In this document: piece after piece, positions 47,175-50,835 of the stretch
Numbering within the stretch: position 1 is the stretch's first letter
Layout of the letters: each line of letters begins with the position of its first letter
Sequence record: ON529858.1
Direction: 5' to 3' (one strand)
DNA length: 64,000 nucleotides
Program-made: the position numbers and the translations under genes
Notes under the pieces: generated by a model
Told to the model about the DNA's origin: nothing
Databases searched by the model: none
The model's input: only the letters and a program-made list of their open reading frames with translations

Positions 47175-47206
47175 GGTTAACGTCTGTCTCACACTCGGAG
47201 AAGGAC

Positions 47207-47222
47207 GTCAAGATTCACGACG
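47207..47222 (-). promoter_or_regulatory. Phage promoter motif copy
   Basis: Minus strand CGTCG-TGAATC-TTGAC. Confidence 0.72.
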
Positions 47223-47243
47223 TTCGAGGTCAAGAATCCTGCA

Positions 47244-47272
47244 TTGACGGCGTGAAACGCCCGATCTATAAG
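47244..47272 (+). promoter_or_regulatory. sigma70 promoter of the + strand RNA
   Basis: TTGACG-N17-TATAAG. Confidence 0.75.
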
Positions 47273-47277
47273 GGTGG

Positions 47278-47755
47278 CTCGAACCAGGGCGGTCCTGCTT
47301 CGCCATCCCCCAGCAGCGCAGCGCCGGGGTGGATCATCCGCCCTGGGGGAGACTGCCGACGGCGTCTAGCAGGACGTTGGGAGCGACAACAGGCTACGTC
47401 CGGAACCCCGCTGCGCCGTTGGGGGTGACCTTCCAAGCCGAAGTAGGAGTGGAGCAAAGCCTGGACCGGCCCTCCACGGTCGTCGCACGGGGCGGGGCCT
47501 ACAGACCGTGATGAGGCGAACGCCGGCCGAGACTAGGCAACCAGGGCGTGACAGCAGGCAGAGACCGCGCTATCCTTCATCGTTCGCAGAACGCTAGGCG
47601 TAGACACCGGACGGTGTCGGTAGCAGATCGGTGGTGGAGACGTCCGCTCCCACCGGCAACCCATCCCGAGGGTGGCAACGAGACGGATGACGCGGCGCCG
47701 GCCGAGAGAAGACGATGGCGATGAGAGCCCTGCTGGCGCGCCGGCAGGGCTTTTT
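47278..47755 (+). ncRNA. Candidate ~480-nt pseudoknotted structured RNA
   Basis: Promoter-to-terminator unit with no codon-biased ORF; several perfect interleaved helices. Confidence 0.7.
47726..47755 (+). terminator. Intrinsic terminator
   Basis: AGCCCTGCTGG-CGCG-CCGGCAGGGCT then TTTT. Confidence 0.8.
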
Positions 47756-47760
47756 CATGG

Positions 47761-47798
47761 AAAAGGCCATTTTCACCGCACAGTGAAAATGGCCTTTT
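47761..47798. terminator. Perfect 16-bp inverted repeat between convergent RNA units
   Basis: AAAAGGCCATTTTCAC-CGCACA-GTGAAAATGGCCTTTT. Confidence 0.7.
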
Positions 47799-47807
47799 GA
47801 GTGAAAC

Positions 47808-47894
47808 TGGAGGAATGTGGCGGAATCGAACCGCCGGGTCTCTCGACCATCACAGATTTGCAGTCTGTGGCCTTACCACTCGGTCCAACATCCC
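47808..47894 (-). tRNA. tRNA with GCA (Cys) anticodon and long variable arm
   Basis: GGGAUGU/ACAUUCC acceptor, ACAGA-CUGCAAA-UCUGU, GGCGG-UUCGAUU-CCGCC, U73, encoded CCA. Confidence 0.88.
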
Positions 47895-47897
47895 GAC

Positions 47898-47931
47898 CAA
47901 AAAGCCCGCTCGGCCGAAGCTGAGCGGGCTG
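47898..47931 (-). terminator. Intrinsic terminator closing the large minus-strand RNA
   Basis: AGCCCGCTCAG-CTTCGG-CCGAGCGGGCT-TTTT. Confidence 0.75.
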
Positions 47932-48096
47932 TTCCGGTAACCAGGGGAGTGCCGTAGCTGTCCCAAGGTGCTGAGCGACTTGTGCGAGGGCGATCCGCCA
48001 ACCTCACCAGACCCCGGCGCCGGGTTCTGGACCTCACGTCGGCCACCTCGAACTCCGAAGAGGGGGAAGCCGATGAGGGCATGTGGGTCCCAGGGT

Positions 48097-48165
48097 CCTC
48101 TCCCGCGCTATCAACCCGGTCGGTTCCCTGGTCAGGCCCTCTCCCGCGCTATGAACCCGGTCGGT
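48097..48165 (-). repeat. Two 28-nt direct repeats (1 mismatch) 13 nt apart inside the large RNA
   Basis: ACCGACCGGGTT(C/G)ATAGCGCGGGAGAGG at 48138-48165 and 48097-48124. Confidence 0.9.
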
Positions 48166-49025
48166 GCCTTCATAAATAGGAAACGCCGCCGAACCCGAGG
48201 GCGCGGCGGCGTGTCTTTCGATGCCCTGAGACGAAGCGGGCTATCCAGAGAGGCTTCCGGGATTATCGTTTCCCCAGGTCGTCCAGAAGGCTTTCACCTC
48301 CCTACCCCTCGAATGACGCTTTGTTTAACCGGGTGTCCCCGGAGGAAGTTGCTGCGCTCCCTGTCGTATTGGACCACTCACCTGCGTCCCCTTCCGAATA
48401 CAGCCGCTAAGCCGCACAAGGAAGTCTGTTCAAGCGGACCGTGCGCCTTGCAGGGCTAACACGGCGACCTTACGTCCGAAGACCAAGGCCAGGAGTCATC
48501 TGTCGTCCAACACCGGCAAGACTTTTGCTTCTTGACAAAAATGCCTGTTTGACACGGGCTACCTACCCGTCGAGGTTTATTCCAAGGACACGCTTACCTG
48601 GAGGTCCATCGGCTTTTGACCGACAAAATGCTCCGCGCCCCAATGTGAACCGAACAGCCCACGGTCTACAGGACGCCGCCGAGTTTGACCCCGACTTAAC
48701 CCTGGAGACTGGACGCCGCACTTAACCCATGTCGTGGGTCTCGCACTAAACGCCCTACGCCTTGGACCTCGATGGTTCTCTCGGAGGATTCCGGCAGCGG
48801 GAGCATCCCTGCTCTCACCTGAACCCATGGTGTTGCCATGAGCCTTGACCGGCCGAGGTAGCCCCTATCCCCCATACGCCTCCATCTCTGGAGCCATCTG
48901 AGGGACACCCTGGTAGGGTGGGTCCCGACGCTTGCTTCGAATGACCGACTTGCGCCGGCGCCGGACTGGAAAGTTCCGACTTCACCACCGGTTGCCCGGC
49001 GGCCTCGCTCCGAAGCGATGAGTGA

Positions 49026-49054
49026 GGTTTAGCGACGTCATTCGTCGCGGTCAA
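49026..49054 (-). promoter_or_regulatory. sigma70 promoter of the large RNA with the operator palindrome in its spacer
   Basis: TTGACC-N17-TAAACC; CGACG-N5-CGTCG at 49033-49047. Confidence 0.7.
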
Positions 49055-49084
49055 CAACATTTTTCGAGGGACCCGCCGCGAAGC

Positions 49085-49093
49085 TGTGGATAA
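49085..49093. promoter_or_regulatory. Perfect DnaA box between divergent RNA promoters
   Basis: TGTGGATAA. Confidence 0.5.
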
Positions 49094-49122
49094 CTTTTCT
49101 TGCTGCCTGGGTGTCAGGATTC

Positions 49123-49151
49123 TTGACACAGGGTGTCAACGAGCATATAGG
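49123..49151 (+). promoter_or_regulatory. sigma70 promoter of the tmRNA-tRNA operon
   Basis: TTGACA-N17-TATAGG. Confidence 0.8.
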
Positions 49152-49156
49152 GGAGA

Positions 49157-49570
49157 GATCGAGCAGATGCCTTCGGGCTGAAAACTGTGACATGAAAGAC
49201 GGGCCGGACTCGGGTGCGATTCCCGACGGCTCCACCAAAAGCGCCCATCCGGCATGTCAGACCTTCGGGTCGGTGTCAGGGGATGAGGCTAGTCCCCGGC
49301 GAAGAGGTGTCGTAGAACGCGCCCTCTACCGAAAGCCAGGGTGGACGCTTTTGTTGGGGCCGACCAGATTCGACGGGCGTTGGTAGTGAAGTGGGTTCGA
49401 TGGGTGGCTCCCCCAGCCAAGCACTGACAAATGTCGCTGCAAATGACAACGCTCCGTTCGCGGTGCGTGAAGCCATCGCCGCCTAATAAGCGGTAGAGGG
49501 GTGTCCGGAGGGGCGCCTGTCACAAAAAGCCACTCGCCTCCGGGCCGGTGGTTCCCTCCACCACCAGTTT
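49157..49570 (+). ncRNA. ssrA: Circularly permuted two-piece tmRNA (3' boundary approximate)
   Basis: Acceptor piece ending CUCGGG-UGCGAUU-CCCGA-CGGCUCC-A-CCA (49237) precedes the coding piece starting GGGGCCG (49356); G3-U70 pair; tag ORF ANDNAPFAVREAIAA* at 49439-49486; inter-piece pairing UGUGACA/UGUCACA. Confidence 0.93.
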
Positions 49571-49663
49571 CCAAAGGTGGGCTGCAACCTCCTACGTCGT
49601 GCTTCTCGGAGGCGACGGGTGGACCGCACCAAGCGCGGTCCTGACAAAGCGCAGCACATTTAT

Positions 49664-49742
49664 CGCGGGATAGAGGAGTCCGGTTGTCCTCGTCTGCCTC
49701 ATAAGCAGAAGATCGGGGGTTCAAATCCCCCTCCCGCATCCA
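49664..49742 (+). tRNA. tRNA-CAU, initiator-like (C1:A72, A11-U24) but lacking the three G-C anticodon-stem pairs
   Basis: CGCGGGA/UCCCGCA, UCUGC-CUCAUAA-GCAGA, GGGGG-UUCAAAU-CCCCC, U73-CCA. Confidence 0.92.
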
Positions 49743-49876
49743 TTCTCCTGACCCTCTCATCCGGTGCAACTCCGGGCGGGCGCAACCCGTGGGGGTATGG
49801 AGTGAAGCCCAGGAGCCGGAGCGATCCGTCCGCTGGGCTGGGCCGGTCCTGCGGGGCCGGCCCCGACTTTCTTAGG

Positions 49877-49961
49877 CGTGCGATGGCCGAGTGGTCTATG
49901 GCGGCGGGCTCATAACTCGCTGGAGCAATCCGCGTTGGTTCGAATCCAACTCGCACGTCCA
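49877..49961 (+). tRNA. tRNA-CAU with class II long variable arm
   Basis: CGUGCGA/UCGCACG, GCGGG-CUCAUAA-CUCGC, V-arm UGGAGCAAUCCGC, GUUGG-UUCGAAU-CCAAC, U73-CCA. Confidence 0.9.
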
Positions 49962-49970
49962 AGCCTTCCG

Positions 49971-50003
49971 AACCCCCGGCGCCGCATAGGCTCCGGGGGT
50001 TTT
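49971..50003 (+). terminator. Intrinsic terminator of the tmRNA-tRNA operon
   Basis: AACCCCCGG...CCGGGGGTTTT. Confidence 0.75.
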
Positions 50004-50008
50004 GCGTA

Positions 50009-50374
50009 TCAGGCTCGGCGGTCCGCCTGGGCGAGCCGGGCTTCAGCGCGCTCGTGCGAGCGTTGCTCGGCGGCGTAGCGGCTCATGTCCTTCAGGTGGG
50101 CGATCGCCACGGAGTCGGGCGCGCCGACGGCCCGGAACGGGACCTTGGGCGCCATCTCGACATAGCGATGCAGGAGAGGTTGGAAGGGGACCTTGTGCTC
50201 GATCGCGACGCGGGCCAGGGCGGCGGCGACGATGGCGACGATGATGGTCTCAGGCGTCCGGGTCGGTTCTATGTTCCACAGACCAGGAACCGACTGTCCT
50301 GGGTGCTGCGTCTGTCTCGATACGTCGTCTGCGGCGTAGCGGAACAGGTTCTCATAGGCAGTGCCCTGTAGCAT
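50009..50374 (-). CDS. Hypothetical protein
   Basis: ~121-aa ORF with GGA RBS. Confidence 0.55.
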   Translation of the reverse strand: MLQGTAYENLFRYAADDVSRQTQHPGQSVPGLWNIEPTRTPETIIVAIVAAALARVAIEHKVPFQPLLHRYVEMAPKVPFRAVGAPDSVAIAHLKDMSRYAAEQRSHERAEARLAQADRRA

Positions 50375-50436
50375 CAGCGGTCCTTGTCGTGTGTGGGTTG
50401 ACAAGGGGTAGCACTGTTTATGCTACGCTTCTAGCC

Positions 50437-50835
50437 CTAAAGTCGACCCGAGTTGTATTCGGCCCAGCGATCCGACCAGTATTCCTCGTAGTCCTCGGCG
50501 CAGTCCGTGCAGAGCCAGACCTTGTTCGGGTCGGGCTCGCCGCTCTTGGGGTCCCAGACGTAGCAGGTCATCGACCCAGGCTGATGCACGCCGTAGAAGG
50601 AGCCGCAGTTCTCGCAGCCGCCGAGCGCGGCGCCCTGCTCGGCGAAGTGACCGTTGATGGCCCAGCGCAGGCGGTTGAAGTTACCCCAGATCAGGTGCTT
50701 GAAGGCGTTCCGCAGGAACCACGTCCTGGTGCCGTATCGCACGGTCCAGCGCATCGGCTCCCAGGTGAAGACCTTGACCTTCTCGATCGTGACCGGGCCG
50801 ATCACGACCTTCTCAGGTGTCCATGATAGCGTCAA
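50437..50835 (-). CDS. Hypothetical Cys-rich (possible Zn-binding) protein; start uncertain
   Basis: CENC...C...CTDC pattern; Trp-rich. Confidence 0.55.
   Translation of the reverse strand: MTLSWTPEKVVIGPVTIEKVKVFTWEPMRWTVRYGTRTWFLRNAFKHLIWGNFNRLRWAINGHFAEQGAALGGCENCGSFYGVHQPGSMTCYVWDPKSGEPDPNKVWLCTDCAEDYEEYWSDRWAEYNSGRL

Follow-up and report, generated by a model that had tools for sequence, protein, structure and literature searches.

A permuted tmRNA gene in phage Bajun

Brevundimonas phage vB_BgoS-Bajun (Bajun; ON529858.1) is a phiCbK-like siphophage of the Dolichocephalovirinae with a 207-kb genome, isolated on B. goettingensis LVF2. We analyzed a transfer-messenger RNA (tmRNA, or ssrA) gene in the final 64 kb of this record. 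That stretch of 64,000 nucleotides is called the window here, and coordinates are window positions unless a record or contig is named. Positions 48500-50500 match the Bajun record with 100% identity. An earlier note, made from the letters alone, had placed a phage-encoded permuted tmRNA gene of the alphaproteobacterial type at 49157-49570, with the acceptor part ahead of the coding part. The range is essentially that of the gene, and the order, with an intervening segment between the parts, is correct. ARAGORN calls a permuted tmRNA (tmRNA*) at 49145-49577 on the plus strand, with the tag VAANDNAPFAVREAIAA followed by two stops. The record already annotates the same span as tmRNA BAJUN_03120 (record positions 192406-192838). 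Two Rfam models also match above their thresholds: RF04321 (tmRNA_permuted) at 49174-49486, with 87.9 bits against a gathering cut-off of 47 (E 1.7e-15), and RF01849 (alpha_tmRNA) at 49119-49536, with 57.4 bits against a cut-off of 50 (E 3e-13) and model positions 1-355 covered. ARAGORN and the alpha_tmRNA model were among the checks that the earlier note had named, and both call the gene. Its features are as follows.

49123-49151, plus strand: promoter-like box, read from the sequence (TTGACA at 49123-28, a 17-nt spacer, and TATAGG at 49146-51)
49158-49237, plus strand: acceptor piece, from the Rfam alignment with pairings verified by script; the 5' end is placed from the promoter position
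49158-49164 with 49395-49401, plus strand: distal helix 2, AUCGAGC with GUUCGAU (script-checked)
49169-49178, plus strand: UUCG hairpin of the acceptor piece (script-checked)
49198-49201 and 49204-49206 with 49378-49381 and 49374-49376, plus strand: helix 2a, GACG and CCG with CGUU and CGG
49207-49209, plus strand: GAC motif
49210-49226, plus strand: T arm, with stem 49210-14/49222-26 and loop UGCGAUU
49227-49237, plus strand: acceptor 3' strand CGGCUCC (49227-33), discriminator A (49234), and encoded CCA (49235-37)
49238-49355, plus strand: intervening segment, 118 nt, from the end of the encoded CCA to the predicted RNase P cleavage site ahead of G49356
49356-49543 at minimum, plus strand: coding piece, from ARAGORN (which extends it to 49577), Rfam, and a pairing check
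49356-49362, plus strand: acceptor 5' strand GGGGCCG, with G3 pairing with U70
49370-49373, plus strand: UCGA motif
49402-49418, plus strand: pseudoknot PK1, with S1 GGG (49402-04)/CCC (49410-12) and S2 GGCU (49406-09)/AGCC (49415-18)
49433-49489, plus strand: tag frame, with the tag at 49433-83 and stops UAA UAA at 49484-89, from ARAGORN, translation, and resume-codon context
49478-49494, plus strand: P5 hairpin, GCCGC (49478-82)/GCGGU (49490-94), with both stops in its 7-nt loop
49499-49543, plus strand: pseudoknot PK2, with S1 GGGUG (49499-503)/CGCCU (49514-18) and S2 CCGGAGG (49505-11)/CCUCCGG (49537-43)

The acceptor stem has 7 bp and is formed across the two halves of the gene. With the T arm and the UCGA and GAC elbow motifs, it makes up a tRNA-like domain. 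Alanine identity is encoded by G49358:U49231, which corresponds to G3:U70, by the discriminator A49234 (A73), and by the CCA. With the last base of the CCA at 49237 and G1 at 49356, the acceptor (3') part, the intervening segment, and the coding (5') part follow one another in that order. The tag frame runs from ACA AAU GUC, in which GUC is the inferred resume codon, to GCC AUC GCC GCC UAA UAA. PK1, which is minimal, precedes the tag and PK2 follows it, as judged by hand comparison and script-checked pairing, and the PK2 long loop contains an ACAAAAA motif. This matches the two-piece tmRNA layout given in a review, with PK1 and PK2 on either side of the tag region. The alphaproteobacterial subtype is indicated by the full RF01849 model, marginally above its cut-off. 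The identity of the gene is supported because ARAGORN and two Rfam models agree and every defining helix pairs. This confirms, well beyond chance, that the Bajun gene is a complete circularly permuted tmRNA gene of the two-piece type.

ARAGORN was unreliable as the sole detector. It made no tmRNA call in the related phages CcrRogue, CcrBL10, Kikimora, Domovoi, and Kabachok. For most Brevundimonas chromosomal tmRNA genes it gave either no call or an implausible tag, such as GGNDGRAPAPVLGPGRRA. The same Brevundimonas genes (L013, L021, L026, L033, L036, L065, L070, and other loci) scored 223-233 bits with Rfam, and parsing gave the tag ANDNFAGEV(R/A)LAA. Because ARAGORN misses both relatives and hosts, we used Rfam and direct parsing.

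The promoter-like box ends 6 nt ahead of the first paired base of the acceptor piece. A generic promoter scan had missed it because its -10 hexamer has no T at position 6. A TTGAC(A/T)-N17-TA.. box was found in all 10 clade genes listed, and 9 of the 10 have an (A/U)UCG helix-2 start 6-7 nt after it. Six cultured phages and the uncultivated contig L192 supply the nine, and L136 has GUUG at this place. A direct repeat, GGTGTCA, occurs around the box at 49110-16 and 49132-38, and an inverted TGACAC that overlaps the -35 hexamer lies between its copies, giving TGACAC-AGG-GTGTCA (49110-49139). We considered this as an operator and dropped it: there was no above-chance recurrence in the window, and it is absent from relatives.

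Conservation in related phages

Every related phage examined, among Dolichocephalovirinae of Caulobacter and Brevundimonas, has the order tRNA-Cys or tRNA-Gly, tmRNA, and two tRNA-Met genes at the syntenic site. The syntenic homologues scored 71-88 bits with Rfam in phiCbK, CcrRogue, and CcrBL10 and 57-90 bits in Kikimora, Domovoi, Kabachok, and CcrPW. The upstream neighbor is tRNA-Cys in CcrRogue, CcrBL10, Kikimora, Domovoi, Kabachok, and CcrPW, and phiCbK has tRNA-Gly instead. Contig L192 has the same syntenic arrangement. Ruegeria phage V10 and Rhodobacter phage RcXuper also have a permuted tmRNA (108-113 bits), without this tRNA neighborhood and with a T loop of the general alphaproteobacterial type.

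Most relatives' records leave the gene unannotated. We found unannotated permuted tmRNA genes in CcrRogue (L002 1240-1558), phiCbK (L003 1203-1521), and CcrBL10 (L004 1203-1521); in Kikimora, Domovoi, and Kabachok (L005-L007, from 1179 to 1524 or 1434); and in V10, RcXuper, and CcrPW (L008-L010, from 1169 to about 1470). According to the phiCbK genome paper, Rfam gave no RNA elements except tRNAs, and a paper on B. pondensis phages stated that no tmRNA could be detected.

We scanned IMG/VR with a signature of the T arm and acceptor, which gave at least 120 matches. From the matches listed, 43 distinct phage tRNA-like domains were extracted. All 645 pair cells in them were standard (100% paired), and six pairs had changed on both sides. 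The covariation score was 0.457, compared with 0.113 for shuffles (0 of 500 reached 0.457) and at most 0.061 for slid partners; the extraction rule left only helix 2a unselected, and its three pairs all covary. UCGA, GAC, ACCA, and G3:U70 were invariant in the 43 copies, although for the G:U pair (43/43) U70 was fixed by the search pattern and G3 was not.

Outside the tRNA-like domain, distal helix 2, PK1, P5, and PK2 are kept via compensatory changes in L192, CcrRogue, phiCbK, CcrPW, and Kikimora. The PK1 order a, b, a', b' is retained with other pairs: UGGG/UCCA and GACC/GGUC in CcrRogue, GUGGG/UCCAC and GAUC/GAUC in L192, and UAGGG/UCCUA and GAUC/GGUC in CcrPW. PK2 S2 covaries as well (GGCGGA/UCCGCC in CcrRogue, GGCGGGC/GCCCGCC in L192, CCGGGA/UCCCGG in phiCbK, and GGUGGGG/CCCCACC in CcrPW). 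This pseudoknot comparison was made by hand, without a statistical control, and the conservation of PK1 is drawn from it. The tag, P5, and PK2 are 94% similar to those of CcrRogue and L192 by BLAST. A 34-nt block (49466-49499) is 100% identical in 19 of 27 matching phage records, which are all Caulobacter phages save Bajun's own record. Taken together, the comparisons indicate that the tmRNA structure is under purifying selection.

The predicted tag

The probable resume codon is GUC at 49433-35, which gives the tag VAANDNAPFAVREAIAA, with 17 encoded residues beginning with Val. The earlier note had given the tag as ANDNAPFAVREAIAA. That string is present in frame and is followed by UAA UAA (49439-49489), but its start is probably not that of the tag, because the host-like resume context lies two codons upstream. 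To describe that context, we parsed host tags from 94 Caulobacterales genes among the matches listed, of which 44 were distinct. In 44 of 44 distinct genes, the resume codon was GCN, preceded by A at position -4 and U at position -1. In Bajun, only GUC 49433-35 is in a host-type context (ACA AAU before GUC), whereas GCA 49439-41 has C at -4. Therefore, the tag is more likely VAANDNAPFAVREAIAA. CcrPW reads ACA AAU GUC AAC GAC AAC, with GUC exactly at the position of the hosts' GCG, which supports a Val resume codon in the clade. The appended peptide would be A-VAANDNAPFAVREAIAA, with the first A coming from the charged alanine. The C-terminal stretch of predicted tagged peptides is ...NDNAPFAVREAIAA, and a protease-resistant version with the AIAA end changed to AIDD would read ...NDNAPFAVREAIDD.

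Host tags were near-uniform 13-mers, ANDNFA[EGQS][ED]..[LIV]AA. The Caulobacter tag is ANDNFAEEFA(V/I)AA, of which the earlier note had quoted ANDNFAEEFAVAA correctly, and Brevundimonas tags are ANDNFAGEV(R/A)LAA or ANDNFAEEYAVAA. As that note observed, the Bajun tag differs from the host's and ends in AA. However, a difference in the adaptor-binding middle, where the note had put it, is not supported. AANDN and the terminal hydrophobic-A-A are kept, and the NDN block is invariant in hosts and phages. What has changed is a two-residue N-terminal extension (V-A) and a spacer from NDN to the terminal AA of nine residues, compared with seven in the host.

Phage tags were diverse. They had 10-18 residues, counted from the codon before NDN, and all distinct ones found end in (L/I/V/M)AA before the stop. 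Such a hydrophobic-A-A end favors a true degradation tag over a decoy. No host-type tag was seen in any phage copy examined. The CcrRogue tag is identical to that of Bajun, and phiCbK and CcrBL10 share the C-terminal REAIAA, which is fixed at the nucleotide level in these four phages. Other tags are ...NDNDVVAFASAREAIAA in phiCbK, ...NDNFAAGERVLLAA in Kikimora, and VNDNDAPVMEQRLAA in CcrPW.

Relationship to the host lineage

The signature of the T loop and acceptor, GGGUGCGAWUCCC..CG.CUCCACCA, was searched in one genome per species. Among the matches listed, it occurred mainly in Caulobacterales (Brevundimonas, Caulobacter, Phenylobacterium, Asticcacaulis, and Maricaulis-like genera), which fits an origin in, or coadaptation to, the host order. 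The earlier note had proposed capture from the host lineage, and such a link is plausible on this evidence. A recent capture is not: host genes score 223-243 bits with alpha_tmRNA and Bajun scores 57, and BLAST aligns phage and host genes over only 38-47 nt, within the tRNA-like part (87-92% identity). Any capture would be ancient, because the gene is syntenic across the whole subfamily. The note had also reasoned from Caulobacter as the host, but the host is Brevundimonas.

A Brevundimonas-type permuted tmRNA with the tag ANDNFAGEVRLAA also occurs on two contigs filed as Rhizobium sp. Q54 (a metagenome-assembled genome) and Pseudanabaena biceps (L051 and L071). This suggests that those assemblies are misbinned or contaminated.

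The intervening segment

The 118-nt intervening segment is presumably excised from the precursor. Its fold has a long closing stem and three hairpins (-49 kcal/mol; z-score, -1.9), and the middle hairpin, GGGGAU-GAGGCUA-GUCCCC, is conserved. Host intervening segments are 22-42 nt long (median, 31; n = 94, among the matches listed), compared with phage medians of 82-104 nt.

A structured element of ~110-125 nt with the core CAGGGGAUGAGGCUAGUCCCCGGC occupies this segment (49238-49355), and it has the same place in the tmRNA gene of Kikimora (L005 1242-1367). In CcrRogue (L002 1963-2077) and CcrBL10 (L004 1943-2054), the element instead lies just upstream of the second tRNA-Met, with 28 nt identical in CcrRogue. 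It is always flanked by a tRNA-type 3' end on one side and an RNase P site on the other, and therefore could be released as a discrete RNA. It had no Rfam match at E up to 1. A scan of IMG/VR for the core motif matched only two isolate genomes, those of CcrBL10 and CcrRogue, and so the element is not a widespread RNA family.

Genomic setting

The tmRNA gene sits in an RNA island of ~2.8 kb (about 47175-50009) that is free of coding sequences and lies within the replication module. The island contains tRNA-Cys, a GOLLD-like RNA, the tmRNA, and two tRNA-Met genes. The tRNA genes, found by ARAGORN and Rfam and present in the record, are the conserved neighbors.

47808-47894, minus strand: tRNA-Cys (GCA), upstream of the tmRNA
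49664-49742 and 49877-49961, plus strand: two tRNA-Met (CAU) genes, downstream of the tmRNA

A scan of the window found no terminator-like site between the tmRNA and the first tRNA-Met, and for this reason the tmRNA and both tRNA-Met genes are possibly cotranscribed. All three flanking tRNAs are unusually long tRNAs of their kind (87 nt for Cys; 79 and 85 nt for the two Met), and those of relatives are similar (85-89 nt). The first tRNA-Met begins with C, ends in ...GCA, and has a C1:A72 mismatch; the CcrBL10 record labels its counterpart tRNA-fMet.

The GOLLD-like large RNA lies in the gap between tRNA-Cys and the tmRNA (48223-48641, minus strand) and is unannotated in ON529858.1. It matches RF02032 over its full length (model 1-416); the match has 104 bits (E 1.7e-27) and does not reach the gathering score (150). 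GOLLD RNAs at or above that score adjoin the permuted tmRNA in phiCbK (L003 208-694; 165 bits), where a tRNA-Gly is embedded, and in V10 (L008 543-976; 151 bits). GOLLD next to phage-origin tRNA clusters has been described previously.

Bajun has 27 or 28 tRNAs in total: 3 inside the window, plus 24 outside it by ARAGORN or 25 as listed in the record. None is a tRNA-Ala. The main cluster is at record positions 133-138 kb (L254 33321-38347) and includes a peptide deformylase gene, and ARAGORN calls an extra tRNA-Arg within that annotated coding sequence (L254 36349-36432). Elsewhere, the phage encodes the RNA ligase RtcB, a small GTP pyrophosphokinase, and a GcrA-like cell cycle regulator (listed by position: L252 14100-14684, 17923-19161, and 30523-31230). 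With the tRNAs, peptide deformylase, RtcB, and the like present, the tmRNA fits a broad translation-support complement. An integrase is not among the annotated genes of the genome.

The earlier note reported no smpB in the window, and SmpB is also missing from the annotation of the rest of the phage genome. We ran tblastn with E. coli SmpB against ~50,700 phage records (E up to 0.01). It matched 68 records, none of them from Caulobacter or Brevundimonas phages. Without a phage SmpB, the RNA must use that of the host.

Proposed function and its alternatives

In our view, Bajun, a virulent phiCbK-like phage, is likely to carry a functional ssrA gene here. All steps of the following scheme are drawn from established tmRNA biology. 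Host RNA polymerase would transcribe the gene from a sigma-70-family promoter. Host tRNA-processing enzymes would cut the precursor: RNase P would cleave ahead of G49356, and the 3' end would be trimmed back to the encoded CCA. The products would be an acceptor piece of ~80 nt and a coding piece of ~190 nt or more, joined by the acceptor stem and helix 2. Host alanyl-tRNA synthetase (AlaRS) would charge the RNA via G3:U70 and A73, and host SmpB and EF-Tu would bring it to ribosomes that have stalled on mRNAs that are broken or lack a stop codon. Translation would then resume on the tag frame and add (A)VAANDNAPFAVREAIAA. The ribosome would be freed at UAA UAA, and the terminal I-A-A would direct the tagged product to ClpXP-type proteases. 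During infection, the phage would likely benefit from ribosomes kept free and amino acids recycled.

Several points count against a working gene. The alpha_tmRNA score barely clears its cut-off (57.4 versus 50), and PK1 is very small (3 + 4 bp). Energy minimization in which the two pieces were cofolded fails to reproduce the comparative structure, and the structure therefore rests on comparison. The rule used to extract the 43 phage domains accepted only copies with every acceptor-stem pair and no fewer than 4 of 5 pairs in the T stem, and so it partly preselected those stems. The resume codon comes from its context only. With no phage SmpB, activity depends on recognition of a diverged RNA by host SmpB. 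A literature search found no expression, processing, or tagging data for Bajun or any phiCbK-like phage.

The selected function might instead be the phage-specific tag itself, if its extension and longer spacer change handling by SspB/ClpXP or another protease. The near-uniform host 13-mers, the longer and diverse phage tags with no host-type tag among them, and the nucleotide-level fixation of REAIAA all point that way. However, the NDN and hydrophobic-A-A recognition blocks are both retained, so that ordinary degradation is the simplest expectation, and conservation at the tag end is partly explained by the P5 stem. We regard such reprogramming as unlikely, although conceivable. The gene might also serve in counterdefense, with extra tmRNA offsetting the stalling that follows when mRNA-cleaving toxins or abortive-infection nucleases act, or when the phage itself degrades host mRNA. 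It is established that tmRNA relieves stalling once a toxin has cut mRNA, and the phage carries RtcB, an alarmone-synthetase-like gene (the annotated GTP pyrophosphokinase), and a near-complete tRNA set. Still, no sequence feature links the tmRNA to a particular defense system, and counterdefense would be a reason for selection and not a separate mechanism. It seems to us rather less likely than a reprogrammed tag. A broader proposal, that the phage tmRNA is a takeover device whose extended tag alters adaptor or protease handling or counters mRNA-cleaving toxins, and whose intervening segment is released as a stable functional RNA of ~118 nt, is more doubtful again.

The earlier note suggested that a phage copy could uncouple ribosome rescue from the cell cycle. 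The phage would then supply tmRNA when a dimorphic host has degraded its own. The gene has its own constitutive-looking promoter, and the GcrA-like regulator is also encoded by the phage. According to reviews, Caulobacter tmRNA undergoes cell cycle-dependent degradation by RNase R, probably via the free 3' end of the two-piece form. Yet the two-piece phage RNA presents the same 3' entry point to RNase R, and the host here is Brevundimonas, not Caulobacter, where tmRNA regulation was studied. Host SmpB protects tmRNA and is itself cell cycle regulated. Without its own SmpB, the phage RNA should share the fate of host tmRNA, which weakens the idea. We hold it to be improbable, and it is pure speculation. 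Least probable by far is a decoy or a relic, meaning an RNA that titrates host SmpB, or a decaying host fragment or attachment-site remnant. ssrA fragments do occur in temperate phages. Against this stand a complete gene with its own promoter, its conservation across the subfamily, purifying selection on its structure, and the lack of an annotated integrase. We rejected the attachment-site or host-fragment reading because of the complete gene, its own promoter, and the lack of an annotated integrase, and we rejected the decoy reading because the tag frame and degron are intact. A working ssrA gene thus remains the reading that we prefer.

Comparison with known systems

Two-piece tmRNA of phages is already known and the Bajun gene is annotated in its record. 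The call itself is routine annotation. Three points are not stated in the literature that we searched: conservation across the subfamily, including phiCbK; the extended tag that starts with Val; and the length and structure of the intervening segment. They refine a kind that is already known. The call would gain importance only through experiments. With Caulobacter, phiCbK-like phages form a classic model pair, and the role of Caulobacter tmRNA in cell cycle timing is well studied. The gene, at the same place in every subfamily phage examined, offers a test case for what a virus gains from a ribosome-rescue RNA without SmpB, and for the effect of a virus-specific tag on the fate of tagged proteins.

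The closest cellular counterpart is the two-piece tmRNA of Caulobacterales (RF01849), reportedly described in Caulobacter crescentus by Keiler, Shapiro, and Williams in 2000. Shared features are the permuted order, the T-loop/acceptor signature, G3:U70, ACCA, UCGA, and GAC. So are the PK1-tag-P5-PK2 arrangement, NDN near the start of the tag, the hydrophobic-A-A end, and the bases A (-4) and U (-1) ahead of the resume codon. The Bajun gene differs in its alpha_tmRNA score (57 versus 223-243 bits), its intervening segment (118 versus 22-42 nt), its tag (17 encoded residues from Val versus 13 from Ala), and its location in a virus without smpB. Its homologues in the Dolichocephalovirinae are in the same syntenic place, but divergence has put helix 2, PK1, and the intervening segment out of the reach of BLAST. 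With V10 and RcXuper, it has the permuted form in common and not the tRNA neighborhood.

Among other phages, a survey of 402 tmRNA carriers found 53 unique two-piece forms (Buchholz et al. 2022, PMC9004378), and the tmRNA database has 79 phage entries (PMC11915505), although the supplement of the database paper has no Brevundimonas or Caulobacter entries. Like Bajun, the OM43 phage Melnitz and pelagimyophages carry a virus-borne, alphaproteobacterial-type permuted ssrA that was found by ARAGORN, lies near tRNAs, and has an early-type promoter (PMC9004378). The Melnitz gene has a glutamine riboswitch, whereas Rfam detected none in the Bajun gene, which resides in a large, GC-rich Caulobacterales siphophage and has a different structured element in its intervening segment. 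The one-piece tmRNAs of mycobacteriophages, including DS6A, are likewise phage-borne ssrA genes that depend on host SmpB, but theirs have the standard, unpermuted order. The DS6A tmRNA is without a tag frame and acts as an inhibitor, whereas the Bajun gene has a full tag frame.

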